IMG/VR virus record: IMGVR_UViG_3300046171_000231 | Coordinates: 124,001 to 188,000 of that record | Reading direction: 5' to 3' (one strand) | Length of the DNA: 64,000 nt | In this document: piece after piece, positions 5,225 through 44,932 of the stretch | How the letters are laid out: every line of letters begins with the position of its first letter | Position numbering within the stretch: the first letter of the stretch is position 1 | Program-made: the position numbers and the translations under genes | The notes under the pieces: generated by a model | Seen by the model: only the letters and a program-made list of their open reading frames with translations | Database searches by the model: none | What the model was told of the DNA's origin: nothing

Positions 5225-6691
5225 TTATCCAGTGTATTTTGAACCGTATGGTGCGACTTTTTGACGTTTTTTAAGATAGTCTACTTCAGTTGCAATGGAT
5301 TGTGCTGTTCTTCCTTTATCCTTTTTCTTTGGTTTACTAATATCAGATAAGTTAAGTCCCATTCTTGTTACTGTTTTGATTTCTTTTCCATCCTTATCTT
5401 TTACAAATTCTGGTTTTAAGTTTTTCTTAATACGTTCTTTATCTGTTTCTTTTTGAGATGCAGCAGCTCCTCCAACTATTCCTCCTAAACCTGCACCTGT
5501 TAATGCTCTCTTAGCAAAACTACTCATACCTTTTCTAGCAGCGGGACTTAATGCTGCAACTGCACCTACTGTAGCAGCAACTCTACCAACTGGTCCTGCT
5601 TTTGCAAGAGCTTTAATAACTGGAGCTGCTTTCTTTGCACCTGGTAATGAAATTGCTTTTTTAAAGAATGCTCTGTTTTGTGGTCCAATTGCTGCTTTGA
5701 CAACATCTTTCTGTACTAATCTCTTTGTTTTTAAAGCACTTTTTTGTGTTTTACTAAGAATATTTTCAGGTTTTATACCATACTTTTTACTTACGGTTCT
5801 TCTGTATTCAGCAGTAGTAACTTTTTTTCCTACGTCTGGTAGTTTAACTTTTGTTGTTTTTTTTGTAATTTTTTTTATAGGTTCTGTAAAACCTCTATTC
5901 TTCCTAGTAAGATTTTTTGTGATTTTCTTTTTCTTTACAGTTCCTGATTTATCATCAAACGGTGTTTGATCAACTACTTCTGATGGTGTTACTGATGTTT
6001 TAGGTTTCACTCTTTTAAATAAAGTTGGTTCTGAACCTGGTTTCGGTTTGTTTGTCTGACTATAACCAGAAGAACTTACTCTTTTTTGATTTACGTCTTT
6101 TGTAAAATCTTTTGCTTTCTTTGATACTTCAGATTGCTTAACTACCTTTGTTTTAGAACTACCACTTGCTCCTGCAGATCCTTCAGTTGATCCAGATGTG
6201 CCAGTTGCCCTAGAGAAAGCATCTCCTCTTGTAGTTTGACGACTTAATTCTTTTATTTTAGCTATTGTTAATTTTCTTTGCTGAACTAAAGATGGTTTTT
6301 TACCGACTCCTGCATCATATAATCTCTTCTCACTTGCCCTTACGTCTGCGATGGATTTTTTTAAACCAGTTCTATCAGGTGCCTTACTTGTAGTTTTAGG
6401 TTTTCCAAACTGTGGTTTAGGTTCCATACTAGGAACCTTTTTACCTGTGTTTTTAAATGTCGTTTTATCTGGTACAAAAGGACCGCCAGCTTTATATAAA
6501 TCTAATCCTGGTTGTACAACTGTTGGTTTTATATTTTTTCCAAATCCCTTCTGAAAACTCTTCTGACTCTTTTTATATTGCTTTAATGCTTCTGAATCTT
6601 TTTCTAGTAATATTTCAAGATACCTTTGTGCCTCCGACAAAATATAATCAGATTCATTAACAACTTTTCTAAAATTCTCAAACGTCCTCAT
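5225..6691 (-). CDS. Very basic Lys-rich late protein, probable internal head/DNA-binding protein
   Basis: 488-aa K/T/S-rich ORF with N-terminus MRTFENF; TATAAATA at 6713-6720. Confidence 0.65.
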   Translation of the reverse strand: MRTFENFRKVVNESDYILSEAQRYLEILLEKDSEALKQYKKSQKSFQKGFGKNIKPTVVQPGLDLYKAGGPFVPDKTTFKNTGKKVPSMEPKPQFGKPKTTSKAPDRTGLKKSIADVRASEKRLYDAGVGKKPSLVQQRKLTIAKIKELSRQTTRGDAFSRATGTSGSTEGSAGASGSSKTKVVKQSEVSKKAKDFTKDVNQKRVSSSGYSQTNKPKPGSEPTLFKRVKPKTSVTPSEVVDQTPFDDKSGTVKKKKITKNLTRKNRGFTEPIKKITKKTTKVKLPDVGKKVTTAEYRRTVSKKYGIKPENILSKTQKSALKTKRLVQKDVVKAAIGPQNRAFFKKAISLPGAKKAAPVIKALAKAGPVGRVAATVGAVAALSPAARKGMSSFAKRALTGAGLGGIVGGAAASQKETDKERIKKNLKPEFVKDKDGKEIKTVTRMGLNLSDISKPKKKDKGRTAQSIATEVDYLKKRQKVAPYGSKYTG

Positions 6692-7079
6692 TATTTTCAG
6701 ACACTTTCTTTTTATTTATATCAAATGATTCATAGGCATCATAGTCTCCAAACAACCAAGCATCTGCTTTTGCTGCTTCACGATATGCTTCAATACTCAT
6801 ATCTTTGAGTCCTTTTACTTCTGATTCTGTTTCAACAACTTTAACTCTGGGTTGAGTATAACCATCCCAACTCTTATGAATCTCTTTCACTTGCTCATCT
6901 ACACTTGCCATTTCCATCTGTATCTTACCCTCGATCCATATCTTTTTCAACCAAGCAACAATACCTAATGCAAGATGTTGTAGATATGGGTTCTTAAATT
7001 TCTTCTTGACCCATCTTTCTGCTTTTGCATACCAAGGATCTGTGCCCTTACCAAATTGTTTCTGAAATTGTATTTTCAT
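6678..7079 (-). CDS. Hypothetical protein
   Basis: 133-aa ORF overlapping both neighbours. Confidence 0.6.
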   Translation of the reverse strand: MKIQFQKQFGKGTDPWYAKAERWVKKKFKNPYLQHLALGIVAWLKKIWIEGKIQMEMASVDEQVKEIHKSWDGYTQPRVKVVETESEVKGLKDMSIEAYREAAKADAWLFGDYDAYESFDINKKKVSENNEDV

Positions 7080-7672
7080 TTGCTTAATCGGATATTGAAT
7101 GAAACTGAGATACGATCTCCATATGATTTATTTTCATTTACTGAATGACTTAAATGTGCAGGAAAAACTAATATTCTACCCTCTACAGGATTAAAACAAT
7201 AAGTGTGATGAAATTTGTTTTGAATTTTAAATTGTGGATTATATGATTCAATTTCATTATATGTCTCAAAATCATTTGGTGACTCAAACACTATATCTCC
7301 AGAATTTTGAGGACATTGAATCCATAAAACTCCTGCCAAGTTACTATTTGGATGATTATGTTTTATATTATAATCACCTGGTTTATTAATATTAATCCAA
7401 GCTTCAACTTTGATATTAGTAGATTCAAGAATTGCAGGAAATCCTGATAGACAATTTATAATAAATTTTTGTAAGACATCATCTTCATTTTTTACTTGAA
7501 ATGGAGGTGACTGCCACCCCCCATAATTTGAAATTAAAACACTTTGAACACCGCTGTGCTTTATGTCGTAAGCATATTTAATTAAATCATCTTTTATTTC
7601 ATCAAATTCATTTACATCAAACTGATGTATTATGGTAGGAAAAAGATTTGTAGTGCTATAACTTAAATCCAC
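7076..7672 (-). CDS. 2OG-Fe(II) oxygenase superfamily protein (TIGR02466-like)
   Basis: WININKPGDYNIKHNHP...LAGVLWI...FPAHLSHSV...RISVSFN. Confidence 0.85.
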   Translation of the reverse strand: MDLSYSTTNLFPTIIHQFDVNEFDEIKDDLIKYAYDIKHSGVQSVLISNYGGWQSPPFQVKNEDDVLQKFIINCLSGFPAILESTNIKVEAWININKPGDYNIKHNHPNSNLAGVLWIQCPQNSGDIVFESPNDFETYNEIESYNPQFKIQNKFHHTYCFNPVEGRILVFPAHLSHSVNENKSYGDRISVSFNIRLSK

Positions 7673-8849
7673 TAAAAGTATCCTTTTTCACATCCTGTTT
7701 AATACCACCGACAATGTAGGATTCTACTTCTGTCTCCTGTGGTGCCACTTGTAATCCTTTTGAAGATATCCAATGCTCTGTCCAAGGTAATGGATTGTTT
7801 CTTGCTGCAATGTCATAAACTGGTTTCAATCCAATTGCTCTCATTCTACGATTTGCTATCCATTCAACATATTGATGAAGTAGTTTGTCATTGAGACCAA
7901 TCATACTTCCATTTGTAAATAGATACTCTGCCCATCGCTTCTCTTCGTTTACACAACGATCAAACATACTATAAGTCCACTGCTCTTCTTCTTTGATGAT
8001 TTCCTTCATCTGTTTGTCGTCACCCTTTCTCCAGTTGTTTATAATATTTTGAGTTATTGCCAAATGGAGGTTTTCATCTCTAGCAATAAGCGAAATGATT
8101 TTCGCAGATCCTTCCATGAGTTTAAGCTCACCAAAAGCAAAACTACAAGCGAAAGATACGTAAAAGCGGATACCTTCCAAAATGTTGACATTAGTAACTG
8201 CACGATAAAGTTTCCTCTTTAATTCTTTTGTTTCCCACTCTGCTGTAGGACTTCCTTTCCAACCTTCTTTCCAGAAGTTACCTGTATCATACTGATGTGC
8301 TTCGTTTATAAAGGTATCATATGACTCTGTAACACTTGATGCTCTGTCTAGGATACGATCATCAGATAGTATCTTATCAAAGACTTCAGATGGGTCTGAG
8401 TATACATTCTTAATAACATATGTGTATGAACGTGAGTGTATCATTTCCATAAATGACCATACTTCCATACAAGCTTCTAACTCAGGTAGAGAACAATATG
8501 GTAAAAATGCCATACCTGGTGCACGACCCTGTACTGAGTCGAGCATAATCTGATACTTAAGATTAGATGTATAAATGTGTTTCTGCTCTGGACGTAGTGA
8601 TTGATAATCGCCACGATCTTTTTGTAATGATACCTCTTCTGGTCTCCAGAAATATCCTAATTGAGACTTTGTTAAATTCTCAAATGCAGGATACTTAAAG
8701 TTATCATATCTTTGAACTCCTAAAGGTTTGCCAAAAAACATAGGTTGTTTTTTTGTGTCGCATTCCTCTGTGTTAAAGACAGTCATGCCTTTAAGATTTG
8801 TCATTGATTTTTTTCCGATAGGTGAAACTTTAAATTGAACAGGATTCAC
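7656..8849 (-). CDS. nrdB: Ribonucleotide reductase class Ia beta subunit
   Basis: FWRPEEVSL, EMIHSRSY, EGIRFYVSF and IARDENLH diiron motifs; VAPQETE tail. Confidence 0.97.
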   Translation of the reverse strand: MNPVQFKVSPIGKKSMTNLKGMTVFNTEECDTKKQPMFFGKPLGVQRYDNFKYPAFENLTKSQLGYFWRPEEVSLQKDRGDYQSLRPEQKHIYTSNLKYQIMLDSVQGRAPGMAFLPYCSLPELEACMEVWSFMEMIHSRSYTYVIKNVYSDPSEVFDKILSDDRILDRASSVTESYDTFINEAHQYDTGNFWKEGWKGSPTAEWETKELKRKLYRAVTNVNILEGIRFYVSFACSFAFGELKLMEGSAKIISLIARDENLHLAITQNIINNWRKGDDKQMKEIIKEEEQWTYSMFDRCVNEEKRWAEYLFTNGSMIGLNDKLLHQYVEWIANRRMRAIGLKPVYDIAARNNPLPWTEHWISSKGLQVAPQETEVESYIVGGIKQDVKKDTFSGFKL

Positions 8850-11154
8850 ACTCTTCCTCCTTTGCGTTACTTAATTCGTTTAATAAACATTCTAGTTTGT
8901 CACTCTTTTCATTTTCTAAGGTGTCACCAACTTCATCAGTTTTAATATCATAAGTGTTTTGGTAGTAAGATGTTTTCCAACCATATTTGTATGTGGTTAG
9001 AAAATCATTTGCCATTACACTAACTGGAACTTCTGAATTATCATAGTGTTGTGGATTGTACGACCAGTTCCCAGAAATCGCTTGGTCAAAGAACTTTTGC
9101 ATAACAGCAACAATATTAATATACCCTGTATTATCAGGCATATCCCAGAGCAACGTATAATTATTCTTTAAGGTATTGTAAGAGGGAACAATCTGCTTGA
9201 GAGGTCCTTTCTTTGACTTCTTGATTGAAAGATATCCTCTTGGAGGTTCTATACCATTAGTTGCGTTGCTAACAACGGAAGATGATTCCGAAGGCATTTG
9301 TGCGGATAATGTGCTGTTTCTTACACCGTATTTCTTTACATCCTGACGAAGAGATTCCCAGTCAAAGTTTAACTTATTTGGAACTAATTCATCAACATCT
9401 GTTTTGTAAGTATCGATTGGAAGTACACCGTGAGAATATTTAGTACGATCAGAATATTGACATGCACCTTTCTCTTTGGCTAGGTTCACAGTGGACTTTA
9501 TCAAATAATATTGGAATGCTTCTGTCAAGTCATGTACCAATTTCCATGCCTCTGGGTCTCCATAAGATACCCCTTGCTTGGCAAGGTAATGTGCTAGACC
9601 AATGTAACCAATTCCGAGGGAGCGTCTTGCTTTAGTAGCGACTTCTGCTGCTCCGACTGGGTATTGTTGAAAATCAATGAGTTCATCAAGACTCCGAACA
9701 CTAAGATCGCAAAGCATTTCAAAATCCGAAACATCCCTAATTTTGCCAATATTAATAGCAGAAAGGATACAGAGAGCAATTTCCCCAGTTTCATCGTCAA
9801 TATGTTGTATAGGTTTGGTTGGTAATGTAATTTCTTGACATAGATTACTCATCTCAACCTTATCAGTAAATGATGAGTGAGAATTGCAATGGTCAATATT
9901 CATTAAATATAGTCTACCAGTTTCTGCTCTTTCTTTCAATAGGTCGAGTATAAGTTCTTGAGCACCTATTGTTTTCTTTGGTATTGTGTCATCATTTTCA
10001 TACTTTAAGTATAGTTCATCAAAATCATCTGTACCAAAACTATCATAAAGCCCTGGCACATCATGAGGAGAAAACAGGGTAATCTCTTTATTCTCAATGA
10101 ACCTCTCATAAAATAATTTACTCAATTGAATACTATAGTCTAATTTACGAACTCTATTATCTTCTGTTCCCTTATTATTCTTTAGAACAATTATATCTTC
10201 TATTTCTTGGTGCCAGATTGGAAAGTGGACAGTTGCTGATCCACCTCTGATGCCATTTTGAGTGCAGCATCTGACAGTTGATTCAAACTTTTTAAGAAAC
10301 GGGACGACACCTGTGTGTTGAACTTCTCCACCCCTGATTTTAGCGTTGATCCCCCTGATCCTACCAGCGTTGATACCGATACCAGCCCTTTGTGCGACAT
10401 ACTTACCAATGGCCATGTCAGAACTAAAAATACTATCCAAGGTGTCGTCAATATCAACCAGAACGCAAGACGCATACTGCCGAAGGGGTGTACGGACTCC
10501 CGCCATGATTGGTGTTGGGATGTTGATTCTGTGTTTGGAAATGGCATCGTAATACTTTTTAACGTAATCTAATCGGATATCTGGTGAATACTTTGAAAAT
10601 ATAGAAGCAGATATCAAAAGATACATGAACTGTGGAGACTCATAAAGCAATCCTTCACTTCTATCTTGTACCAAATATTTATCGACTACTTGGCGAAGTC
10701 CAGCATATGTGAAGAGATAATCTCTTTCGTGGTCTATGAATGTTTCGAGTTTAACAAATTCCTCTTCAGAATACAAATCAAGTAACTCTTTGTCATATAC
10801 TCCTGCATCTACGCACTTCTTAACGTGATCAATAAGTTTTGGGTGGTCGTGTATTCTACCAAAGATTTGTTTACGAACAGAGTATAATAATAGTCTTGCT
10901 GCAACATATTGATAATTTGGATGATCTAAATCTATTAAATCACTTGCTGAACGGATTAATATTTCTTGTATCTCTCCAGTTGAAATACCATCATAGAACT
11001 GTATACCTGATTGTATCTCTACTTGACTTGCAGAGACCCCTGCAAGACCCTTACACGCTTCTTCTACCATTACGTGCATCTTTTCAAGGTTCAATGGTTC
11101 AATAGCACCATTTCTCTTTTTAACCTTTGTTCCGTTGGTCATATTTTTTTCCAA
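8830..11154 (-). CDS. nrdA: Ribonucleotide reductase class Ia alpha subunit
   Basis: N-terminal ATP cone; PTPIMAG, SCVL, SNLCQEI and PSESSS motifs. Confidence 0.97.
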   Translation of the reverse strand: MEKNMTNGTKVKKRNGAIEPLNLEKMHVMVEEACKGLAGVSASQVEIQSGIQFYDGISTGEIQEILIRSASDLIDLDHPNYQYVAARLLLYSVRKQIFGRIHDHPKLIDHVKKCVDAGVYDKELLDLYSEEEFVKLETFIDHERDYLFTYAGLRQVVDKYLVQDRSEGLLYESPQFMYLLISASIFSKYSPDIRLDYVKKYYDAISKHRINIPTPIMAGVRTPLRQYASCVLVDIDDTLDSIFSSDMAIGKYVAQRAGIGINAGRIRGINAKIRGGEVQHTGVVPFLKKFESTVRCCTQNGIRGGSATVHFPIWHQEIEDIIVLKNNKGTEDNRVRKLDYSIQLSKLFYERFIENKEITLFSPHDVPGLYDSFGTDDFDELYLKYENDDTIPKKTIGAQELILDLLKERAETGRLYLMNIDHCNSHSSFTDKVEMSNLCQEITLPTKPIQHIDDETGEIALCILSAINIGKIRDVSDFEMLCDLSVRSLDELIDFQQYPVGAAEVATKARRSLGIGYIGLAHYLAKQGVSYGDPEAWKLVHDLTEAFQYYLIKSTVNLAKEKGACQYSDRTKYSHGVLPIDTYKTDVDELVPNKLNFDWESLRQDVKKYGVRNSTLSAQMPSESSSVVSNATNGIEPPRGYLSIKKSKKGPLKQIVPSYNTLKNNYTLLWDMPDNTGYINIVAVMQKFFDQAISGNWSYNPQHYDNSEVPVSVMANDFLTTYKYGWKTSYYQNTYDIKTDEVGDTLENEKSDKLECLLNELSNAKEEECESCSI

Positions 11155-12113
11155 TTGTTAAATTTTACTTTTGCTTGTAAACCAGAGTATGTATTTGATT
11201 CTAGCACACTCATGATTTTGTGTCCACCCAATACCATATCGTTGATGTCCTTTTCAACAATAGACGTTGGCCAGATTACTACTTTGTATCCTCCATTAAT
11301 GGTTTTGTCGATTCTGTTGACGATTTCTCTGTTGCGAGGTTCATTATCATAAACGTAAATACAATCGCTCCAACCAAACGACCTAATATCAAGATCGGAG
11401 CCGCACATAGCAACACCGTTTTGTACCAAGGTCGCATCGAAGGGTCCTTCAATGATGTATATGGGTTTTTCATTATCAACTTTATCGAGTCCATAAATTT
11501 TTGGAGCATCTTCATTAATCATCACAGTGATATATTTAACAGAGTTAGGACCTAGACTCCTGCCTTGAAATCCGATCAAATTCTTTTCTGTATCATGTAG
11601 TGGTATTATGATACGTGATTCTTCCCTACCGATAGTGTCAAAGGTCTGTTTTTGTGTATTTGCCCACTCTTTAAACTTATGTGCAAAGTAAAATTTTGAT
11701 GGGTCTAATTTTCTCTTTTCAAGATATTCCTTTGCAATCGGAACTTCAGTTGCCTTTGGTAAATCTAACTTCTTTCTGAATACTGGTTTCTTAAATTCTA
11801 ATTTTGGTTCATCAACAACGAAGTTTCTACCACCTGCAAACCCTTCTTTAAACTTCTCCATAGTGTATTGTTTATGAAGAGTTGCATCTATTTGTTTTAG
11901 AAAATTATTAAATGAAGAACTTGCACCGCAGTTATGGCACTTGAAGTTTGTATTTGTCTTAACCTGATAGAAATATCCTCTTGCTTTATTCTTATGTTTT
12001 TGAGAGTCACCACAAATCGGACAACGAAAGTTAAAGAGATTTGGTTTAACTCTTTTAAACTTCTGAAGTCTTGAGGATACGAGACCAATATACTTGGAAT
12101 CAATTATATCCAT
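11139..12113 (-). CDS. gp61: DNA primase (T4 gp61)
   Basis: CPICGDS...CHNC zinc finger; EGPFD and DNEPRN TOPRIM motifs. Confidence 0.95.
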   Translation of the reverse strand: MDIIDSKYIGLVSSRLQKFKRVKPNLFNFRCPICGDSQKHKNKARGYFYQVKTNTNFKCHNCGASSSFNNFLKQIDATLHKQYTMEKFKEGFAGGRNFVVDEPKLEFKKPVFRKKLDLPKATEVPIAKEYLEKRKLDPSKFYFAHKFKEWANTQKQTFDTIGREESRIIIPLHDTEKNLIGFQGRSLGPNSVKYITVMINEDAPKIYGLDKVDNEKPIYIIEGPFDATLVQNGVAMCGSDLDIRSFGWSDCIYVYDNEPRNREIVNRIDKTINGGYKVVIWPTSIVEKDINDMVLGGHKIMSVLESNTYSGLQAKVKFNNWKKI

Positions 12114-12586: not shown

Positions 12587-12596
12587 TGTATAGTAA

Positions 12597-13001
12597 TTAC
12601 TTTTCTACTATTATACTTGATTGTGGTGGCACTGTCAATGATCTCATAAATCTCTGTCCGATAGGAGATACTACAAAACTAATCACAGTTAATGCACCTG
12701 CGATTGTCCACATCTTTTTCTCCATCATACGGAGTCTTTGGTCAACTAAACGTATATCTCTTTCACATCCTTTCTTAATTTCATTGGTTGCACGATCCAT
12801 ATCCTTGTGCAATCCATCTATTTTCTCAAATAAAACTGCATCAATACGATCTTGCTTATCTAATTTCTCATTATGTACAGCAAGAAGTTCGCCCATCTTT
12901 ACAGAATTTTCCTGTAATGATTGAACTACTTTCTCTAATCTTTCTAAAATAGCAGCGTTTACACCCGTATTATCGTCCACTTTGAGTATTTTTACCTTCA
13001 A
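12597..13001 (-). CDS. Coiled-coil protein with C-terminal transmembrane segment
   Basis: Heptad-rich sequence followed by WTIAGALTVISFVV. Confidence 0.65.
   Translation of the reverse strand: MKVKILKVDDNTGVNAAILERLEKVVQSLQENSVKMGELLAVHNEKLDKQDRIDAVLFEKIDGLHKDMDRATNEIKKGCERDIRLVDQRLRMMEKKMWTIAGALTVISFVVSPIGQRFMRSLTVPPQSSIIVEK
12610..12638 (-). promoter_or_regulatory. Consensus sigma70-type promoter for the cupin-primase-nrdAB operon
   Basis: TTGACA-17 nt-TATAAT embedded in the last codons of the upstream ORF. Confidence 0.85.
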
Positions 13002-13002
13002 T

Positions 13003-13424
13003 TTATTTATTATTCATCCACATTTTACGAGAACCTGTCCCACCATAAGCATATGTCTTTTTCTTTTTCTTTACAGGAGGTTCATCACCTGCCTCTACTG
13101 AACCTGCAATACCACCACCACTCATAGAGTTTGCTATCGCTACTTCTTCTTTACGAAAATTCTTTATTGCACTAGTTACCTTTTCTTTCGGAGTCATTCT
13201 AGAATCAGCAAATTTTTCTGTAGGGTCTGGTTTTGATTTAATGTTTAGTAAAAATCTAGCAGGGACAGTTGCCATTTTACCAGCATCTATAACTCTCTTT
13301 TTAAGAGATTTACCTTTTGCTTTAGACAGTGATTGCAGTCAGTACCACCACCTCCACCACCAAGACTCATCACTGGTGGAACTTTTTTATTCATCTCTTC
13401 TTGAAATTCACTGAAGGATTTCAT
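13003..13424 (-). CDS. Hypothetical late protein, single-base frameshift near 13340
   Basis: Starts MKSFSEFQEE... at an ATGA overlap with the upstream stop; a 1-nt shift joins LQSLSKAKGKSLKKRVIDAGK to the track ORF 13003..13275. Confidence 0.55.
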
Positions 13425-13765
13425 TCTCCTCCACCTCCTCCATTACCACCGCCACCGTTGCCACCGCCACCGTTGCCACCGCCATTTCCACCACCGTTAC
13501 CACCGTTTCCATTACCACCATTACCATTGCCATTACCACCATTACCATTTCCGTTGCCATTACCATTATCACCATTACCACTATCGGAACGATTATCTCC
13601 TCCACGACCATATCCACCCATATAATATCCTCTTACACCATATCCTTTTCCTTTTCTCTTAATAGGGACGCAAGACTTCAACTTCTTGCTATACTTAAAT
13701 CCTTTCGGACACTTAGCCTTCTTCTTTGCTTCTCTTAAATTTTGTATGACTCTATCGATGTCCAT
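13421..13765 (-). CDS. Protein with Gly/Asn-rich low-complexity tail
   Basis: Basic N-terminus followed by GNGNG/GGNGG repeats. Confidence 0.65.
   Translation of the reverse strand: MDIDRVIQNLREAKKKAKCPKGFKYSKKLKSCVPIKRKGKGYGVRGYYMGGYGRGGDNRSDSGNGDNGNGNGNGNGGNGNGNGGNGNGGNGGGNGGGNGGGGNGGGGNGGGGGE
13430..13580. repeat. Degenerate Gly/Asn-coding microsatellite (CCACCG/CCATTA units)
   Basis: Tandem cca-tta-cca-ccg-ttg runs visible directly. Confidence 0.8.
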
Positions 13766-14136
13766 TAGAGATTGTTGAGTTGATCGAGACAGTCTTGATC
13801 TACATCAATTGTGTCTACTTTTGTTTTTGGATATTCTGGTATCCGTTTTAAAAAAACTAAAAAACTCTTGACGATTGGCCAGAGTTCTTCTTCTAAATTA
13901 TAAAATAATAAAGGAACTGCAGCATCATGAAAAACATTAAACAATATAATTAAATGATTCATAATCAAATGAATCTTCAACTCTCCAGTATTCTTATACC
14001 TTTTAAGCAATCTTTTAATATAACGAATCCTCTTCAAGTCACTTTCAAAGTCATCTTTGGTAACTGCTTGAGGATTGTCATAGAATTTTATAGCGAAGAG
14101 CATATAGTTGCTCTCATTCAATTCATCAAATCTCAT
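13765..14136 (-). CDS. Conserved T4-like phage hypothetical protein
   Basis: FAIKFYDNP...F..DLKRIRYIKRLLKRY...HLIMNHLIILFNVF pattern, familiar from T4-like myoviruses. Confidence 0.7.
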   Translation of the reverse strand: MRFDELNESNYMLFAIKFYDNPQAVTKDDFESDLKRIRYIKRLLKRYKNTGELKIHLIMNHLIILFNVFHDAAVPLLFYNLEEELWPIVKSFLVFLKRIPEYPKTKVDTIDVDQDCLDQLNNL

Positions 14137-14146
14137 ATTATGTCAT

Positions 14147-15317: not shown

Positions 15318-16793
15318 CTATGGTCTGCCTGGTGCCATGTTTGAGGGGTTGGCAGTTCCTGGTCCGTATGGATTATACTTTGGTTTTCTTGTCTTAGGTG
15401 CTGTATCTTTTTTAATTTCACCTGATGGTTCTTTCTTCTTTTTAGTTCCATCTTCATTATATGGACTATTCTTTCCACCTGGTCTCATAATATCAAATGC
15501 AGGGTCATCCTTTGCAGGAGTTCTTTCTGTATTCTTTGGTGCATTATCTCTTTTAGGTGCACCGTGTGTTGGTGTTCCATCTTTTCTAATTATTGTTTCA
15601 TCTATCTTCTCTTCACAAGCATCAACTGCCATCACCATTGGATCTCTTTGACCAGCAGCACGAAGTTTATTCTTGATTAAATTAATCATTGCATACTTGC
15701 TACGAAGATCTGGTTTCTCTTCTTCTTTCTCATCTTCTTTCTTCACAGAAGTTTTAGTCATCATACTCGATACTTTATCTTTCTTTGCTAATTCTTCCTT
15801 TTTCTTTTTCTCATCATACATTTCTATCATTCTTTTCTGTGCTTCAGAAAGAGTAGAACCTTTTAAAAGATGATGAGCATATTGCATACTCTTAGTTTTC
15901 TTCTCCTCTTCTTTTTGAGGATCAGGAGAAAGTGTTACAGCACCTGATGCATAATTGTCAACACCTTTACCAGTTATTTTATCTTTTCCTCTTGGTTCTG
16001 TTGAGATAGTTCCATCTGCTAAGTATGCTTCTGCTTGAGTACGAATTGCTTTACCAATTGCCTTCCTTCTTTTCATAAGATACTTATCAGATTTATTCAC
16101 CTTACCATCATTATTAACATCAGCATCTTCTTTTCCAACTGGATCTAATCCACCACCTTTTGCTTTTGCAGTCATACTACCTTTCTTTCTTTCACCTTCA
16201 TATGGTTCACCGTGGTCTGTCATCTCAACAGATTCAATATTAGGATTACCACGAAGTTCTGTAATCTTAGCACGGTCTGCAAATCTTACATATGATTTAC
16301 CATTCTTATCTGTAACTCTTACTTTATATTTCTGACCAGGTTCTTCATCTAACTGTTGTAGATATGCAAGTTCAAGTTCTTTCTCCGAATCATTCTTTTC
16401 TACGAATACCTTATATAATGCATTTGCAACACCATCAACTGCTAATTCATCTGCACTGTTAATATACTTCTCTGACATACCACCAGTCTTACCAAATAGT
16501 TTTTCTCTAACAGCAGTTCTTTCTGCCTGACCTAATGAACTGTTAGACATATATTGAGCGAAAGCAGCTTTCAAATCTATATCTTCTCTTCTTGCACGAT
16601 ATCTAATATCATAAACTGCCTGACGAATTTTCTTTTCAGAACCTTCTTCAGACGCACCTTTTCCACCACCACCTTTTGCTGCTGGTTTTCCACCACCTTT
16701 CGCTTCAAGAGGTGCAGATTTTCCTTTAGATTTTGCCATTGCAGCAGGTGCAAACTTTCTTGCTGGAAGACTTTCAGCTATATCAGTGCTCAT
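15318..16793 (-). CDS. Late virion-associated protein with a dockerin/EF-hand-like loop
   Basis: DADVNNDGKVNKSDKYL motif; TATAAATA at 16825-16832. Confidence 0.6.
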   Translation of the reverse strand: MSTDIAESLPARKFAPAAMAKSKGKSAPLEAKGGGKPAAKGGGGKGASEEGSEKKIRQAVYDIRYRARREDIDLKAAFAQYMSNSSLGQAERTAVREKLFGKTGGMSEKYINSADELAVDGVANALYKVFVEKNDSEKELELAYLQQLDEEPGQKYKVRVTDKNGKSYVRFADRAKITELRGNPNIESVEMTDHGEPYEGERKKGSMTAKAKGGGLDPVGKEDADVNNDGKVNKSDKYLMKRRKAIGKAIRTQAEAYLADGTISTEPRGKDKITGKGVDNYASGAVTLSPDPQKEEEKKTKSMQYAHHLLKGSTLSEAQKRMIEMYDEKKKKEELAKKDKVSSMMTKTSVKKEDEKEEEKPDLRSKYAMINLIKNKLRAAGQRDPMVMAVDACEEKIDETIIRKDGTPTHGAPKRDNAPKNTERTPAKDDPAFDIMRPGGKNSPYNEDGTKKKKEPSGEIKKDTAPKTRKPKYNPYGPGTANPSNMAPGRP

Positions 16794-16804: not shown

Positions 16805-18076
16805 TTACTTTCTAACTTTATATTTATTTATAAATTGAAATCCATAAGAACTTCCAGGAACCATAGTTTCGACGTATTTACGGAGTTTATCAGTGCCAGT
16901 TAATCTCTGATCTGCTGAAACACCCGATGGAGTTGTTGCATTTACAACTGCTTCTTGCAAATCTTTCACCCAAGATTTAAACATTATATTATTCTCTGCA
17001 ACACATATCAAATGATTTGCACCACGACGAATAATACGTCCTATTAGACCTGTATTTAAGTTTTCAACTTTATCACCAATATTAAAAATCTCCTTCTTAA
17101 CGTATGATTCTCTTAAATTTTCTGTATCATATTTTGGTGCAATCTCCCATATATTCCAAAACTCTTTCATCTCCTTAACATTCATTGTTTGTCTTACTGT
17201 ATCAAACAATGTCATTGCCATTTTTCTTGGAGTGTCTTCTGGTAATCCTGCACGGAATGATTTGAAATCTCCTTCTGCTGCTGCAAGTCTCATTCTTGAA
17301 GATGATAAACCTTCCATACCTTCTGCATCAGGATCACGATCACCTGATGAAACAACTTCCATATTATCGAATTGATAGAGTTGACCATTATAATTTTGTG
17401 ATAATTTATCAAACTCTTTTACACGATCCTGTCCTGCGACTATTCTAACATTAGTATATCCATCATTATGTGCTTTCTTTAATACATCAAAAATAGTACG
17501 ATTCGCTCCGTCATTTATAATTCTTTCACTGTGTTGTGGGAACATTTGTCTCATCATTGATACTTTAGTGTCAGCATCAAGTGGATTTTTCTTAGGATCT
17601 TGTGACCTTGATGGGACAATTATATAATCACTTTCTTCTTGCTCTGCTGATTGTGCAGCTATATCCATTAATTGTTGATGACCTGCGTGTGGTGGATTAA
17701 ATCTACCAAATGCAAGAGTTAATGTTCCTTTTGTTTTTTCAACTGGTGGCGGACCTGCTGCTAAATCGGGACTTTGAACTTGTTGTTGCTGCTGCTGTTG
17801 ATCTGGTGCAGGTTCTTGTTGTGGTGCTTGTTGACCCTCTGGTGGAACCTCCATATTAGGATCAGATAAATTCTTTTCCTTTTCTGATTGCTCTGGATCT
17901 TTTCCACCTACTTTCTGTCTCTTATTATAAAACTTTAACTTACCTTTCTCTGTCTTCGCTACAAATTCTCCTGTATTTCTATCAGTCCATCCACCATGAC
18001 CGTCACCAACTAAACCCAATCTTGCTGCTTGTTGGGTTGCAGTGCTCTCAGTAATAAATTGTAAAAATGATTTCAT
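16805..18076 (-). CDS. Cytidylyltransferase-like (HIGH-family) nucleotidyltransferase
   Basis: FGRFNPPHAGH (HxGH), VAGQDR and LSSSRMR motifs. Confidence 0.85.
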   Translation of the reverse strand: MKSFLQFITESTATQQAARLGLVGDGHGGWTDRNTGEFVAKTEKGKLKFYNKRQKVGGKDPEQSEKEKNLSDPNMEVPPEGQQAPQQEPAPDQQQQQQQVQSPDLAAGPPPVEKTKGTLTLAFGRFNPPHAGHQQLMDIAAQSAEQEESDYIIVPSRSQDPKKNPLDADTKVSMMRQMFPQHSERIINDGANRTIFDVLKKAHNDGYTNVRIVAGQDRVKEFDKLSQNYNGQLYQFDNMEVVSSGDRDPDAEGMEGLSSSRMRLAAAEGDFKSFRAGLPEDTPRKMAMTLFDTVRQTMNVKEMKEFWNIWEIAPKYDTENLRESYVKKEIFNIGDKVENLNTGLIGRIIRRGANHLICVAENNIMFKSWVKDLQEAVVNATTPSGVSADQRLTGTDKLRKYVETMVPGSSYGFQFINKYKVRK

Positions 18077-31607: not shown

Positions 31608-31608
31608 A

Positions 31609-35896: not shown

Positions 35897-35916
35897 AATA
35901 TAAGTTTGATACTTTT

Positions 35917-36706: not shown

Positions 36707-36707
36707 T

Positions 36708-38512: not shown

Positions 38513-38733
38513 TAATCAAATATTCCGTATTGTGTTAGATCGTATTTTACTTTAGCAATACCTTCTTCTTTTACTCTATTAGGTTGTCCTATTTTTGCTA
38601 GAATATCAGCAGGTATTTTCTTTTTAGTAATGTCATAGGGTATAGGTGCGTTTGCTACACATACCCTTACACATTCTAATTCTTCATCAGTCAATGGTAT
38701 CATTGTCCAATCAATTTTATCCATATCAACCAA
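38512..38733 (-). CDS. Hypothetical protein
   Basis: 73-aa ORF following gp45. Confidence 0.55.
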   Translation of the reverse strand: MVDMDKIDWTMIPLTDEELECVRVCVANAPIPYDITKKKIPADILAKIGQPNRVKEEGIAKVKYDLTQYGIFD

Positions 38734-39400
38734 ATGTTGAATCTGGTTCTAGTGCTATAAAGTACTTAAGATTATATTGCTTATTTGTAAACTCGGAAAG
38801 TAATTTAGATGAAATTACTACATCATATGCACCAGGTATAATTTTAATATTTTCTACCTTAAAGTTAAATTCAAAAGTCTGGTCTGTCTCTCCAACATAA
38901 ACTGCATATTCATTCGATGTATCATTCTTCTTATCACGAACAACCATATGAATATCTCCATCTTTACCTAGAACAGATAAGTCAGGTAGTTGATATACTG
39001 CTGCTGCCTTTACAAGTTTTTCTAATGAAGTACTTTCTAATTGAAAAGTTACTTCTTGAGTAGGTAAATTAATCTCCTTATCTGGTGGAGCAATAATTAC
39101 CTGTGGGTCTGCATAAAAATACTTGACTCTTCTTTTACCTTCTTCAATTGAAATGTATGCATCTTTTGAGAAGTCAAGATTAGGGTCTTGATGTAAACTT
39201 AATCCATTTAAGAACTGATTGAGATCATATATTGCAACGTCTCTAGGAAAGTCCTCTGGAATATCTGCTTCAGCAAGAATATTCTTTGCAACTGATATTG
39301 TGCGAAGTTGGTTCCCTTCTTTAACAAGAATTGAATTATTAATTCCTGCAAAGTTTTTAAGAACTGTAAGTGTACTGTCTGATAATTTCATGAAATGCAT
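38726..39400 (-). CDS. gp45: Sliding clamp (T4 gp45)
   Basis: MKLSDSTLTVLKNFAGINNSIL...IYDLNQFL...YFIALE. Confidence 0.95.
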   Translation of the reverse strand: MHFMKLSDSTLTVLKNFAGINNSILVKEGNQLRTISVAKNILAEADIPEDFPRDVAIYDLNQFLNGLSLHQDPNLDFSKDAYISIEEGKRRVKYFYADPQVIIAPPDKEINLPTQEVTFQLESTSLEKLVKAAAVYQLPDLSVLGKDGDIHMVVRDKKNDTSNEYAVYVGETDQTFEFNFKVENIKIIPGAYDVVISSKLLSEFTNKQYNLKYFIALEPDSTFG

Positions 39401-39402
39401 AA

Positions 39403-40792
<1,390 letters not shown>

Positions 40793-40812
<20 letters not shown>

Positions 40813-41899
40813 TAGTCTCAGGCATTTCAAAGTCTGCATCTACTTTATCATATAATTCCATAAATGATTGCTTTGTTTCATCATCAAAACGATTTATGCA
40901 AACTTGAATTGCTTTTGCTTTGTTCTTAAAGATAGAGAAAGCACGAACGATGTGAACAAGTCTACGAGTGCTGATTAGGTCTTCGATACCACCATCATAG
41001 AATGTCTTACGAATAATGTCTGCCCAATCTACAAGTTTCTTGATAAACTCAGCATCTTTAACACCGATTCTATCTGCATGTAATCCAAGTAGTTTGATTT
41101 CATTATTCACACTTGGGTATGCTTGCTCAAATGTTACTGGGAATCTTTCAAGGAAGGCTTCATTGAGCACGTTAGTTCCAATAAATCTTCCGTCGTCTGA
41201 ACCCTTACCTTTAGTATTTGCGGTGGCGAGTATGTTGAATCCTCTAGCTGGCTTAACGAATCTTCCAATTTTTTTAAGAAAAACTCCATTTCCCTCAAGG
41301 ACTGATTGAAGGCAGAGAATCTTGTTAGAGGCAAGGTCGATTTCGTCAAGGAGCAAGATTGCACCTCGCTCAAGTGCTTCGATGACTGGGCCATTGTGCC
41401 ATACTGTGGCACCATCAACAAGACGGAAACCGCCAATAAGATCATCTTCATCTGTTTCAATAGTAATGTTTACACGGATAAGTTCTCTACCTAACTGAGC
41501 ACAAGCTTGTTCTACAGAGAATGTTTTACCATTACCAGATAATCCAGTAATGAATGTTGGATAGAATTGTTTTGATTGTATTACTTTCTTTACATCATTG
41601 AAGTTTCCAAACTTGAAGAATGTTTCGTCAATTGCAGGAACTAAATTCTTTTCAGATGCAGGTAATACTGCAGGAGATTGGAATGTTCTTTCAATCTGCT
41701 CTACATCTTTTTGTGTGACTTCAAGATTCCACTTACCTTTTGATACTTTGAAACTCGCTAGTTTCTTAGTAACTGTTTGATAAGTAATATCATTCATTGC
41801 ACAAAATGCTTTGATATCTGCTGTTGTAATCTCAGTACCGTATAGGTTCTTAAGTTTTTCGATTGCTTGCTCGGAAGTCATTTTAGTTTCAAAGGGCAT
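40793..41899 (-). CDS. cobS: CobS/MoxR-like AAA+ ATPase
   Basis: Walker A GLSGNGKT, Walker B LLLDEID, ATANTKG and FLERF. Confidence 0.88.
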
Positions 41900-41933
41900 A
41901 ATAATAAAAGGTTTGTTTCTTAACTATACCTAT

Positions 41934-41990
41934 ATTATAGTTAAAAAAAAGGGGTCGGTAAACCCCTTGTGTGCCAGTTTGTCAACTGGT
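41934..41990 (-). promoter_or_regulatory. Putative early-promoter element (palindrome, hairpin, -10)
   Basis: CCAGTTGACAAACTGGCAC, then AAGGGG/CCCCTT hairpin with T-run, then TATAAT. Confidence 0.6.
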
Positions 41991-42254
41991 TTACATTGTC
42001 TCCATATATTCGATATGGTCTTTCAATTGTTTAATTAGTTTTGATTTATTATGTCTTCTATCTAATTCAATACCGATTGTACGACCAAATGTTTCTAATT
42101 CTAGTTTTGACATAGAATCATAATCAAGAGGTTCTGGATTCACAGGGTCTTCTACTGAAGCAGGTGCTGTATCTTCTACTGAAGGTGTAGTAGTAACATC
42201 TTCATATGCAGAGTGAACTTCATTAGTTGATAGTAAATCTGTAAAACGTGTCAT
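41991..42254 (-). CDS. Hypothetical protein with a C-terminal Rho_N/HeH-like helix pair
   Basis: DSMSKLELETFGRTIGIELDRRHNKSKLIKQL. Confidence 0.6.
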   Translation of the reverse strand: MTRFTDLLSTNEVHSAYEDVTTTPSVEDTAPASVEDPVNPEPLDYDSMSKLELETFGRTIGIELDRRHNKSKLIKQLKDHIEYMETM

Positions 42255-42391
42255 TCTTCTGTACTTGCTTCGGGTTCTGTTGCAGGTTCCTCTGTTGGTT
42301 CTGCTTCAACCTTGGGTTCTTCCTTCGGTGCATATACTTTAGAATATGCATTCATCATGTCCTGTGCTTCTCTAGGTGTAATTCTAACCAT
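42251..42391 (-). CDS. Small Glu/Pro-rich protein (46 aa)
   Basis: MVRITPREAQDMMNAYSKVYAPKEEPKVEAEPTEE...*; ATGA overlap. Confidence 0.55.
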   Translation of the reverse strand: MVRITPREAQDMMNAYSKVYAPKEEPKVEAEPTEEPATEPEASTEE

Positions 42392-42418
42392 AATATTAAC
42401 GTAAGGTAACTTTATTTA

Positions 42419-44653
42419 TCAAGCTACCAATTCTATAAATTCACTTAATATCTTTTTATTCATCTTCTTACCCTTAAGACTTTTAGTAAATGCTCTCTTT
42501 ATCTCTGCTTTAGTTGCATCTTCTTTAACTTCAAACTCTCCATCATTATTCAAAGCAGATGATGCCATACCAAAGTAAGTGTGATATCCAGATGTAGTGA
42601 TTGCAAAAGACCTTTCCTTCTTCCAACGATGCATCATTTTTATTGATTCTGGAGTTTCATATCCACAATATCTACGAATGAATGAACCACCTTCACGACT
42701 TACAAGAACACGAATACCAATGAAATTAGTTTGTGGGAAACTATCTTTTAGATTTTCAAGTAACATATCAGTTGCTTCATATCTACCAGAGTCTTTTGAA
42801 AGATAAGTCTTACCTAACTTACGGTCACGCAATACACAACCATCACTAAAATAGTTTGTACCCATATATGGTTCATCTTCCCATTGTCTTTGAACCTCAC
42901 GATGATAACGAAGTGGTTGACTTTCTCCATCAGTAAGCACAACACATTGTACTTTCTCTGCACCAGTTCTCTTTTGAAAATCAGGAAGTAATGTGTGTAA
43001 AGTAACCATTGCTTCATTCAAAGGTGTTCCAGATAATCTATATCCATATGGCACATCTAGGTAAGGTGTATTCATATTCCAAGCAAATATACACGCAGAC
43101 CTCCAAATATTAATCATTTGTGTATCTAAATCTTTTGACCTAGTTTGATTACTAAACATATTCAATAAAGCAAATTGGTTGTTGACTTCTGCCATCATAT
43201 CCTTTGGTTCATAGAAAGTCTCTCCATTTGCATGCATAGCTGGTCTAGGATAGTCTGATGTAAATGCATATACATCATAAGGTATTTGAACTTTACGACA
43301 GAACCAGATTAGATTATAGAGTTGCTTAAGAGTATCGAGTAAAACATTGTTCATTGAACCAGACCAATCAAGTATGAATACAAGTCCGTGATTCTTACCA
43401 TCAGGAAGAACAGTAACTTTCTTGAAAAGGTCTTCACTAAATTTGTAATTGATAAGTTTAGTTGTATCAAGAACACCAGTGCGACTTGTAGTAGCACGAG
43501 CATATGCAGATGCAGACTTCTTACACTCAAACTCTTTGACAAGATAGTTTACTTCTTTCTGTGCAGACTTTTTGAATGCATAGAAGTCTTTATCTAATTC
43601 TGCAAATGGGTCATAAGATTCTGGGATTCTATCAGGATTGCAAAGTGAAGTAAAGTAGTTTGGATTTTCTTTGAACTGTTTTTGTATTCTCCAATTTAAA
43701 TTAGTCCAATGCTCATCAAATGCTTTATGTACTTTTTCATTTGAGATTACTACTTTTTTGATATCTACCTTTGGCAATTCAATGTAATGATTCTCACGAG
43801 TACCTTTGTTTACTAAATCTTTAAGTGCTTCATCAAGTGCATCCATAGTCTCAACTTCTGGTTCTTGTGGTTCATCAAGTGCCTGAGTGCCACCACTGAT
43901 TTTATCCATCATATTTTCAATCTCTTCAAGTGTTGGTTCTTGAGATTGTGGTTTCTGATAATCTAAATCTACTTCTTCTCCAGACTCTTCTGATTCTGAT
44001 TTAGGTGAACCACTTAAACCTTCATCACCTAAATCTATACCCATATCATTTTCTACTTCTTGTCTTTCTTGTCTATCTTCTTCTATCTTCTGCTTTGTTA
44101 AGTCATACAACTGCTTTGCAAGAACAAGGACTTCATCAAATGTCTCTGCTAATTCAATCTTACTTACAAGTAAATTCTCTTCAATATCAAAGTCAATATC
44201 TACAAAGTGACCAATCTTGAAGTGTAGATTAACTCTATCTGCAAGGTTTAACTCATCTAGGTCTTTGTTTTCAATCTCAAAGAAATCCTTATCTGATAAT
44301 TCGTGGTATGCATTATAGAATGTCTTGTTTAATCCTTCATATCTTCTCTTGATTAACTTTTCAATACGAGCATCTTCAACAACATTAACAAACTGTTGAG
44401 GTACTTTTACCTCTTTCCACCACTCTGTATCAGGTGTGTAGAGTGCGTGTCCAACTTCGTGACCAACTAACATATCAATTACTCCGTTACTTGCTTTCTC
44501 CCACATCGGAAGTGTAAGTACACGAGTTTGTACATTGAACTGTGCTGTTTCGACTTGCTTGTGCTCAACTACAATGTCTTCTGTGGCAAGTAACTTAGCA
44601 AGTTGTGATTTGATTTCGTGTTGGACTGTCATAATGTTGTTTGCTTTATACAT
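42419..44653 (-). CDS. CobT-like protein: N-terminal HExxH metallopeptidase-like domain plus C-terminal vWA domain
   Basis: GHEVGHAL, NVVEDARIE, MIDAS DWSGSM, GTPL and LTDGE motifs. Confidence 0.8.
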   Translation of the reverse strand: MYKANNIMTVQHEIKSQLAKLLATEDIVVEHKQVETAQFNVQTRVLTLPMWEKASNGVIDMLVGHEVGHALYTPDTEWWKEVKVPQQFVNVVEDARIEKLIKRRYEGLNKTFYNAYHELSDKDFFEIENKDLDELNLADRVNLHFKIGHFVDIDFDIEENLLVSKIELAETFDEVLVLAKQLYDLTKQKIEEDRQERQEVENDMGIDLGDEGLSGSPKSESEESGEEVDLDYQKPQSQEPTLEEIENMMDKISGGTQALDEPQEPEVETMDALDEALKDLVNKGTRENHYIELPKVDIKKVVISNEKVHKAFDEHWTNLNWRIQKQFKENPNYFTSLCNPDRIPESYDPFAELDKDFYAFKKSAQKEVNYLVKEFECKKSASAYARATTSRTGVLDTTKLINYKFSEDLFKKVTVLPDGKNHGLVFILDWSGSMNNVLLDTLKQLYNLIWFCRKVQIPYDVYAFTSDYPRPAMHANGETFYEPKDMMAEVNNQFALLNMFSNQTRSKDLDTQMINIWRSACIFAWNMNTPYLDVPYGYRLSGTPLNEAMVTLHTLLPDFQKRTGAEKVQCVVLTDGESQPLRYHREVQRQWEDEPYMGTNYFSDGCVLRDRKLGKTYLSKDSGRYEATDMLLENLKDSFPQTNFIGIRVLVSREGGSFIRRYCGYETPESIKMMHRWKKERSFAITTSGYHTYFGMASSALNNDGEFEVKEDATKAEIKRAFTKSLKGKKMNKKILSEFIELVA

Positions 44654-44655
44654 CT

Positions 44656-44710
44656 ATTATAACAACGAAACCGCCCCAAGGGACGGTCAAGTGGACACTT
44701 TATCAACTGT
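44656..44710 (-). promoter_or_regulatory. Second putative early-promoter element
   Basis: ACAGTTGATAAAGTGTCCAC, then GC hairpin, then TATAAT; same layout as 41934..41990. Confidence 0.6.
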
Positions 44711-44713
44711 CTA

Positions 44714-44932
44714 CTATCTGACTTTTTTCTCAAATTCACCAAGCTTCTTCTTACCTTTATTTAATGCTTCATATCCTTTATTGATAAGCAAATTCATAGC
44801 ATTCTTTTTCAAGTCTTTAACTTCTTTACTTTTAGCAAAGGTTTTCATTTGTGGCACTATAGTATCAGCAAATCCTTTCATAGTTGCTTTCATACTATCA
44901 ACATCTTCTTGAAATTGTGAGAATGTTTTCAT
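44714..44932 (-). CDS. Small basic protein with capsid-targeting-like N-terminus
   Basis: MKTFSQFQED start. Confidence 0.6.
   Translation of the reverse strand: MKTFSQFQEDVDSMKATMKGFADTIVPQMKTFAKSKEVKDLKKNAMNLLINKGYEALNKGKKKLGEFEKKVR

Follow-up and report, generated by a model that had tools for sequence, protein, structure and literature searches.

A T4-type capsid-targeting leader is the likely common start of a nucleotidyltransferase and unrelated basic proteins in a T4-like cyanomyovirus

Why do proteins that share no other sequence begin with nearly the same ten residues? This question is raised by four open reading frames (ORFs) in a stretch of 64,000 nucleotides (bases 124001-188000, here called the window) of the virus record IMGVR_UViG_3300046171_000231, a T4-like cyanomyovirus genome of 235,761 bp with 34.5% G+C, whose nearest named relative is the Prochlorococcus phage P-SSM2 (about 77% nucleotide identity over parts of a test stretch). 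A sequence-only reading of the window had pointed to four N-termini resembling the capsid targeting sequence (CTS) of the T4 internal proteins (IPs), and all four are indeed present at the coordinates it gave, each beginning a minus-strand ORF with its ATG at that position, in a genome with 93% of its genes on the minus strand according to a rough gene calling. From the evidence presented here we consider it likely that the shared N-terminus is a T4-type capsid-targeting propeptide, i.e. that the Kyanoviridae have a T4-type system whose cargo comprises a nucleotidyltransferase and basic proteins. The four ORFs and their leaders are listed below, with lengths in amino acids (aa), isoelectric points (pI) and a slash at the cut or candidate cut following a leader.

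5225..6691, minus strand: 488-aa lysine-rich disordered protein, candidate internal head protein, pI 10.4, leader MRTFENFRKVVNE/S
6653-6691, minus strand: codons 1-13, leader MRTFENFRKVVNE/S of the 488-aa protein (starts MRTFENF)
13287..13424, minus strand: 45-aa ORF, pI 8.7, leader MKSFSEFQEE (13395-13424), 5' part of a frameshifted gene
16805..18076, minus strand: 423-aa leader-bearing nucleotidyltransferase ("cytidylyltransferase", T4-GC190), identified by Pfam, PHROG and fold search
18047-18076, minus strand: codons 1-10, leader MKSFLQFITE/S of the 423-aa enzyme
44714..44932, minus strand: 72-aa basic protein, pI 9.8, leader MKTFSQFQED
44903-44932, minus strand: codons 1-10, leader MKTFSQFQED of the 72-aa protein

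Each leader stands at the first ATG after an in-frame stop located 6-17 codons upstream. In the scan of the whole genome that the sequence-only reading had called for, no ORF of 30 aa or more other than these four begins with M[KR][STA][FYW]xx[FYW]. With the stricter pattern M[KR][ST][FY]xxF, 4 of the 338 gene starts of the genome, as called by a greedy ORF heuristic, carry the motif compared with 0.04 expected from the position-specific composition; none of 5000 column permutations reached four motif starts, and the strict motif occurs at none of the 1272 internal Met positions of the genome. In P-SSM2, three genes match the strict motif versus 0.02 expected, namely PSSM2_114 (MRTFQEFLQLCE), PSSM2_115 (MKSFKQFLEE) and PSSM2_194 (MKSFSQFLTE). 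The four proteins of the window show no similarity to each other beyond the tag, and many unrelated cargo clusters are found in IMG/VR (see below), both of which bear out the earlier expectation of an unrelated cargo set.

In T4, targeting by the CTS depends mainly on residues 4 and 7 and processing on residues 8 and 10; Asp at position 10 stops processing, not targeting, the propeptides comprise 10-19 residues, and the internal proteins with a CTS stay in the head (PMC9026906, which reviews the CTS literature including Mullaney and Black 1996). As a positive control, the same degenerate DNA pattern was applied to T4 (NC_000866), where 4 of the 9 matches coincide with annotated gene starts. 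The T4 leaders read from this record are MKTFKEFTSTTTPVSTITE/A for ipI, MKTYQEFIAE/A for both ipII and ipIII, and MKTFKEFIKE/D for gp61.1. All four leaders of the window have Phe at positions 4 and 7, and two of the four contain a canonical aliphatic-x-Glu site, which is I8-T-E10/S in the 423-aa enzyme and V11-N-E13/S in the 488-aa protein.

How far the leader is conserved can be read from the 423-aa protein, an ortholog of PSSM2_194 (annotated T4-GC190) with 81% identity. Its 80 orthologs in IMG/VR (58-90% identity) almost all start with M-K-[ST]-F-x-x-F-[LI]-x-E-[STAN], and when the orthologs of P-SSM2, S-SM1, Syn9, ACG-2014d and S-RIM2 are taken together with these 80 loci, giving about 85 leaders, M-K-x-F-x-x-F-[LI]-x-E-[STAN] is kept. 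An alignment of 25 sequences of the enzyme shows M1, F4 and F7 to be invariant and K2 and E10 to be nearly so, with variation at positions 5, 6 and 9. The leaders of distant orthologs read MKKFSAFLNE/A (S-SM1), MKKFSAFLSE/A (Syn9), MKKFSDFLSE/A (ACG-2014d) and MKKFSAFLTE/A (S-RIM2), variant forms are found in S-WAM1 (MRFRQFIIE/A) and in the Methylophilales phage Melnitz (MKKFSEIIE/A), and the motif is retained in orthologs down to 38% identity. A strict pattern with Ser or Thr at position 3 was set aside; it missed S-SM1, Syn9 and S-PM2, the first two of which have Lys at this position (MKKFSAFL[NS]E).

The codons used in the enzyme leaders are diverse. Ser3 is encoded by both TCN and AGY, with Thr also seen, position 8 by TTA, CTA, TTG and CTT (Leu) or ATT, ATA and ATC (Ile), Glu10 by GAA or GAG, and Phe by TTT or TTC. 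Because unrelated codons encode the fixed residues, we conclude that selection acts on the leader peptide, and since the four residues fixed in evolution (4, 7, 8 and 10) are the four that are tied to targeting and processing in T4, the resemblance to the T4 CTS appears to be functional. It is also specific, in that the conserved residues are the T4 determinants and the same pattern retrieves ipI, ipII and ipIII of T4.

For the enzyme, the expected place in the virion can be compared with published proteomes. Sullivan et al. 2010 (PMC3037559) place T4-GC190 both among the core genes of cyanophages and among the virion proteins established by experiment, and the ortholog of the 423-aa enzyme in S-SM1 virions is represented by 25 peptide counts, compared with 25 for gp6, 22 for gp22 and 8 for gp21 (PMC3037559, Table S8). 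Cytidyltransferases are often detected in cyanophage virion proteomes according to the S-CREM2 paper (PMC10665884).

The 423-aa protein (pI 6.6) matches Pfam CTP_transf_like (PF01467) with 44 bits at a cut-off of 21 bits and phrog_395 "cytidyltransferase" with an E-value of 1e-102. Its leader (residues 1-10) is followed by a small conserved beta domain (11-50), a linker that is disordered and rich in Q, P and E (51-105), a Rossmann domain resembling those of NMNAT and PPAT (117-300) and, at about 336-369, a beta domain of the SH3-like kind. In the AlphaFold 2 (AF2) model, the leader is of low confidence with a short helix at residues 4-9, and the Rossmann core 117-300 reaches a predicted local distance difference test (pLDDT) score of 70-90. 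A Foldseek search with the core gave probability 1.0 to NadM (2qjo), NadD (5deo) and PPAT (7yyb), with TM-scores by target of 0.55-0.68; a sequence search against solved structures gave no match. The motifs H130-A-G-H133 (HxGH) and S258-S-S260-R-M-R263 (SxSxxR) are invariant or nearly so in the 25-sequence alignment, which makes it probable that the enzyme is active.

Several features of this protein and its relatives are worth recording. The N-terminal beta domain (residues 11-50) is conserved as QQAARLGL.GDGHGGWYD..GEF.AKT.KG.LKFYNKRQ, and the SH3-like C-terminal domain matches phrog_4808, a short family annotated "ribonucleotide reductase alpha subunit" in PHROGs. Versions of the nucleotidyltransferase of about 550-570 bp are listed for three phages in Table S8 of Sullivan 2010. 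In Melnitz (MZ577097), the nucleotidyltransferase is devoid of the linker and the small N-domain and has Leu or Ile at position 7, and a very basic 130-aa ORF (MKKFSELTSELIE/R) lies immediately upstream of it. In MED4-213 (HQ634174), the nucleotidyltransferase is split in two ORFs, of which the catalytic half starts MEIVDYK... without a leader and the C-terminal half starts MKSLADF; loss of the leader of this kind predicts a loss of packaging there.

If the leader is a targeting tag, it should be modular. The pattern MK[ST]Fx[EQ]FQE[ED] matches at least 119 loci in IMG/VR, of which 80 were examined; the IMG/VR sets were chosen via leader or cargo, so that these counts are not estimates of prevalence. 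All of the 80 loci carry homologs of genes of this genome and are T4-like cyanophage-type contigs. They contain 74 complete leader ORFs, which after removal of the leader fall into 17 unrelated clusters, each with a pI of 9.5-11.3. A wider scan of 1.4 Mb of contigs for M[KR]xFxxF at ORF starts resulted in 218 ORFs in 28 clusters, and the pI is at least 9.5 in 25 of the 28, the exceptions being the enzyme, an acidic 108-aa family (MKSFKQFLSE/S) and one spurious hydrophobic ORF. Compared with the 8.6% of the genes of this genome that are equally basic, this excess of basic cargos corresponds to a binomial P of about 6e-25 with clusters as units. In IMG/VR, no fewer than 27 cargo families without relation to each other start with the leader, and in 25 of them the pI is 9.5 or more. 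The cargos of the window are likewise mostly basic, with pI values of 10.4 (488 aa), 9.8 (72 aa) and 8.7 and 10.0 (the two parts of the frameshifted gene), next to 6.6 for the enzyme.

The flanks of these loci also contain leader ORFs, which were not subject to the choice by pattern. They have either Glu10 following Leu or Ile at position 8 (FITEA, FIGET, FIKEI) or Glu9 (FKEAA, FQESA, FNESA, FMEDQ). The presence of Glu9 in those flank leaders that do not have Glu10 after L/I8 suggests a second cleavage register, in which Phe7 would occupy P3 and Glu9 P1.

A fifth candidate leader gene emerged in a relaxed scan of the genome at 190641-190925 (minus strand), about 2.6 kb past the end of the window and directly downstream of a 599-aa ORF; it encodes 94 aa starting MKDFKTFMEQ with a pI of 10.1. 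The neighbourhood homologous to this candidate contains a 51-aa leader ORF (MKTFKQFQEEWSNKYKKSIDCSNPKGF...) in many IMG/VR contigs.

The remaining three leader proteins of the window differ in how closely they follow the T4 rules. The 488-aa protein (K+R 23%) is disordered in an Atlas model (pLDDT 0.46), and the matches of the Atlas search are sub-threshold (at most 0.83); it belongs to no Pfam or PHROG family, and there is no tblastn match in 50,697 phage records. Among its 114 full-length metagenomic relatives, F4 is present in 106 and a hydrophobic residue at position 7 in 110, and [IVL]xE is located at positions 11-13 or 14-16 (e.g. ...VVNE/S, ...YIKE/N, ...EIYE/S and ...NLQE/K), a pattern by which the leader of this family is classed as a longer, IPI-like form of the propeptide. 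The 72-aa protein is also without a Pfam or PHROG family and without a tblastn match in the same 50,697 records. It has 11 relatives in IMG/VR, all of which keep MKTFSQF[QK]ED, and an unrelated 81-aa ORF (L114) shares the first 11 residues with its leader and continues with VNE/L. By the T4 rules, the 72-aa protein should be packaged and stay uncut at position 10; its cleavage is doubtful because of Q8 and D10.

The 45-aa ORF is also without a Pfam or PHROG family. A word search identified relatives of 64-74 aa or longer that read MK[ST]Fx[EQ]FQE[ED].NKKVPPV..LGGGGGGTD... and then end in a basic tail. The shorter length in the window has its origin in a break of the reading frame, for which two further features are relevant.

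13003..13275, minus strand: 90-aa basic ORF, pI 10.0, probable 3' part of the same gene, continuing the reading frame of the relatives
13326..13338, minus strand: frame break site with two window bases that are absent from this phage's environmental contigs

Frame 2 across the 13003-13275 region reads ...SKAKGKSLKKRVIDAGKMATVPARFLLNIKSKPDPTEKFA..., which matches the relatives P0126 and P0132. When contigs from four runs of four independent metagenome studies were aligned to 12900-13900, each contig spanning 13126-13439 turned out to be without two single bases at 13326-13338. Removing these two bases joins the 45-aa and the 90-aa ORF in one frame of about 139 codons, so that the real gene is 13003-13424. 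The copy in the window is frameshifted, which is either a true variant or an assembly error. Of the four ORFs that had originally been taken for genes, three can thus be kept as such, and the 45-aa ORF represents only the 5' part of a longer one.

A system of this type needs a protease and a scaffold, and a T4-type head module is located inside the same window.

56162..57556, minus strand: gp23 major capsid protein (Pfam Gp23, E 8e-151)
57603..58682, minus strand: gp22-like scaffolding core protein (synteny between gp21 and gp23, acidic composition, many [LIV]xE sites, TATAAATA in front)
58754..59404, minus strand: gp21 prohead core serine protease, the predicted processing enzyme (Pfam Peptidase_S77, E 6e-34)
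59404..59601, minus strand: 65-aa acidic protein, by position a prohead core protein like gp67/gp68 (between gp20 and gp21, TATAAATA upstream)

The gp21-family protease and the scaffolding core genes are, therefore, encoded by the same phage as the leaders. The protease (216 aa) matches the solved structure of T4 gp21 (5JBL; phmmer E 4e-22), with GELGHP and GVSSRG in register. The assignment of the gp22-like gene rests on synteny, and that of the 65-aa protein as a putative core protein on synteny together with the upstream TATAAATA; the 554-aa ORF adjoining the 65-aa gene is gp20-like by position only. In gp23, LAE54/Q is likely to be the maturation site, being at the expected position. The N-terminal region of gp21 itself contains two (I)-T-E sites, MKLITE/E at Glu6 and VKFITE/G at Glu16, the second of which has the same F-I-T-E as the leader of the 423-aa enzyme; these two sites suggest an N-terminal autoprocessing, as proposed for T4 gp21. 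A complex predicted for gp21 and the first 40 residues of the enzyme received a score of 0.00 and speaks neither for nor against such an interaction.

The motif TATAAATA, which we take to be the T4 late-promoter consensus octamer, connects some of these genes.

6713..6720, minus strand: TATAAATA, T4-type late-promoter-like motif, a perfect octamer 21 nt before the start codon of the 488-aa gene
5216, 6720, 15094, 16832, 50153, 58741 and 59633 (first base), minus strand: copies of TATAAATA in the window

Across the whole genome, the coding strand has 20 copies of the octamer and the other strand has 2, and 16 copies are located 13-51 nt before gene starts, including those of the gp22-like scaffold gene and the 65-aa core-like gene. 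The copies are likely to mark a late regulon, and because of the octamer 21 nt upstream of its ATG the 488-aa gene would be expressed late. Two unannotated genes adjoining leader genes also belong to this putative regulon; they encode 316 aa (4235-5185) and 491 aa (15318-16793).

These observations can be combined into a mechanism, in which targeting, cleavage and injection in this phage are what we infer by analogy. Late in infection, proteins that start with M-K/R-x-F-x-x-F would have an affinity for gp22 and the small proteins of the scaffolding core, and would in this way enter the assembling prohead. The protease gp21 would then remove the leader after a Glu with an aliphatic residue two positions upstream, for which the 423-aa enzyme offers I-T-E10 and the 488-aa protein V-N-E13 as candidate cut sites. 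The leaders ending in FQEE and FQED retain the targeting residues, and their proteins may be packaged uncleaved or be cut after E9 with Phe7 at P3. Staying next to the DNA inside the head, the cargo would be expected to accompany it into the host cell. In this phage it would comprise the NMNAT/PPAT-like nucleotidyltransferase with intact catalytic motifs and three or more very basic proteins that are small or disordered, of which one is frameshifted in this assembly.

Several points weigh against this reading. Leu or Ile at position 8 is absent from two of the four leaders, those of the 72-aa protein (Q8, D10) and of the 45-aa ORF (Q8, E10), so that the cleavage after Glu by gp21 that the sequence-only reading had expected of the whole set finds its canonical site in the 423-aa and 488-aa proteins and misses it in the other two. 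Residues FQE[ED] were fixed in the pattern used on IMG/VR, and their conservation is unreadable from that set. Virion data exist for the ortholog of the enzyme only, and in other phages; phages for which a virion proteome is available contain no homologs of the 72-, 488- and 45-aa proteins. Even the enzyme ortholog is undetected in the virion data sets of S-PM2 and Syn9 (PMC3037559, Table S8), and according to the authors of the S-CREM2 study co-purification of abundant proteins cannot be excluded (PMC10665884).

The last two of these points would fit the view that the leader is a module with some other cellular role, such as that of a degradation signal or of a helix by which the proteins dock onto a membrane or a target in the host, and that the enzyme in virions reflects the co-purification raised by the S-CREM2 authors; the short helix at residues 4-9 in the AF2 model, although of low confidence, would be in line with this. 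We regard it as improbable, since the leader has neither a hydrophobic core nor features of a signal peptide, since the match to T4 also includes residues 8 and 10 of the protease site and the small residue after Glu, for which there is no rationale outside gp21 processing, and since the N-terminal region of gp21 in the window has the same F-I-T-E. Within the sets examined, moreover, the leader is found only in T4-like phage contigs. Somewhat less unlikely, but still clearly behind, is the possibility that the leader does target proteins to the prohead core, where they serve as assembly or scaffold parts that are degraded and expelled like gp22, gp67 and gp68 of T4 instead of being injected. 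Core proteins share the same leader and protease logic, the cargos are small, of low complexity or disordered, and the gp22 and core-like genes have the late-promoter motif in common with the 488-aa gene. Expulsion is, however, difficult to reconcile with the detection of the enzyme ortholog in mature S-SM1 virions at counts comparable to those of gp6 and gp22, and intact catalytic motifs would be needless for an assembly factor; cargo sets vary between phages, unlike essential core components, and in T4 the internal proteins bearing this leader are retained in the head (PMC9026906).

The conserved start could also be an element of the mRNA, i.e. a site for translation initiation or for a repressor at the AUG of co-regulated genes. 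The first codons are AT-rich (ATG AAA xCx TTT) with a dominance of AAA and TTT, and T4 has translational operators that overlap start codons. This preference for AAA and TTT is nevertheless what a genome of 34% G+C would show, and the varied codons for Ser3/Thr, position 8, Glu10 and Phe place the conservation at the level of amino acids; in addition, the fixed residues coincide with peptide determinants of T4, and [LIV]xE is found at a variable distance in the 488-aa family, which leaves this explanation with very little probability. Chance or a compositional bias of N-termini has practically none: Lys or Arg does occupy position 2 in 14% of gene starts, but four occurrences face an expectation of 0.04 with no permutation reaching four, the motif is kept in orthologs to 38% identity and it is found again on 27 or more unrelated cargo families, so that we excluded a chance origin on the grounds of the permutation result, the conservation in orthologs and the spread over cargo families.

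With the T4-type capsid-targeting propeptide as the preferred reading, marine T4-like cyanophages probably inject varied proteins, including an enzyme, together with their DNA. The phages concerned, T4-like cyanophages and their marine relatives, are among the most abundant viruses of the ocean. The leader would provide a concrete mechanism for the unexplained presence in virions of a metabolic-looking core enzyme of cyanomyoviruses, and the ten-residue motif would be a genome-wide predictor of proteins that are head-packaged and probably injected in phages of Prochlorococcus and Synechococcus. Injected proteins act before phage gene expression, which would make them prime candidates for counter-defence and early host takeover, and foreign proteins could be loaded into cyanophage heads by means of the leader, in the way already practised with T4. 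Going further, and as a tentative idea that we hold to be more doubtful than probable, an ancient ten-residue tag may load a large, fast-evolving and hitherto unrecognised repertoire, made up of dozens of unrelated basic proteins and a universally conserved NMNAT-like enzyme, for co-injection, with F-Q-E-[ED] as a subtype without canonical cleavage; the pre-loaded enzyme might then act in the first seconds, e.g. on the NAD/nucleotide cofactor pool, and might counter host defence. The sequence-only reading had likened the cargos to the anti-restriction IPs of T4, a likeness for which Pfam, PHROG and tblastn searches gave no homology support, and an anti-restriction role of the cargos is unsupported by their sequences.

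With respect to the distribution of the tag, the form with F7 has no match in RB49, HTVC008M and Melnitz, so that not every T4-like phage has the tag in exactly this form. Leaders similar to the CTS were also seen on proteins outside the cyanophages. In T4, gp61.1 (NC_000866 18966-19130, minus strand) is a 54-aa hypothetical protein whose leader MKTFKEFIKE has I8 and E10. Two ORFs of the Vibrio phage KVP40 (NC_005083, at 39187 and 58233) start in this manner; one has 215 aa, MKQFCNFLAE/V and a glycine-rich stretch that resembles an S-adenosylmethionine (SAM)-methyltransferase motif, and the other is acidic and has 484 aa and MKLFTEFYQE/V. Since the tag is kept at the same positions known from T4 genetics in Straboviridae and Kyanoviridae, we suggest that the targeting and processing system was part of the ancestral T4-type head, and inheritance of this system by the Kyanoviridae is the simplest account.

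The T4 CTS is already established, and so is the notion that it lets T4-like phages package varied proteins (PMC9026906). A link between a capsid targeting sequence and cyanophages was not found in the openly searchable literature, the scope of which excludes subscription papers (e.g. on the Syn9 and S-PM2 proteomes), and the review of Petrov 2010 does not mention the CTS. Compared with this searchable literature, three aspects are new: the presence of the tag in cyanomyoviruses with conservation at the functional positions of T4, its use as an explanation for the virion association of the core nucleotidyltransferase, and its occurrence on many unrelated basic ORFs in marine T4-like contigs, including the F-Q-E-[ED] subtype. 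The 423-aa protein is the ortholog of the T4-GC190 protein of the literature, a core gene of cyanomyoviruses detected in S-SM1 virions, whereas the virion association is there left unexplained or regarded as a possible contamination, and a CTS-like leader goes unmentioned in the openly searchable papers.

The giant phages SPN3US and phiKZ use another cleavage motif, and their proteins are not known to share a short tag of this kind at the N-terminus. These giant phages are similar in that many proteins inside the head are cut after Glu by a related prohead protease and are then ejected (PMC5694885 and PMC7411985). A precedent for an enzyme as cargo is T4 Alt, which is packaged into the head in active form, processed by gp21 and delivered with the DNA (PMC9026906); Alt is an ADP-ribosyltransferase, whereas the 423-aa protein is an NMNAT/PPAT-like nucleotidyltransferase. 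The closest counterparts are IPI, IPII and IPIII of T4. They belong to the Straboviridae and not to the Kyanoviridae, the cargos described here are without sequence similarity to them (no PHROG or Pfam match), and a large subclass of leaders has F-Q-E-[ED] without an aliphatic residue at position 8. Nevertheless, in both groups the tag begins at residue 1 with the consensus M-K-[TS]-[FY]-x-[EQ]-F, comprising the aromatic residue 4 and Phe7; ipII and ipIII agree with the 423-aa enzyme in an aliphatic residue 8 and Glu10 followed by a small residue, and ipI agrees with the leader of the 488-aa protein in an (I/V)-x-E that is placed later. In both, the tag stands on unrelated, mostly basic cargos that are scattered across the genome, and homologous gp21, scaffold and gp23 are present.

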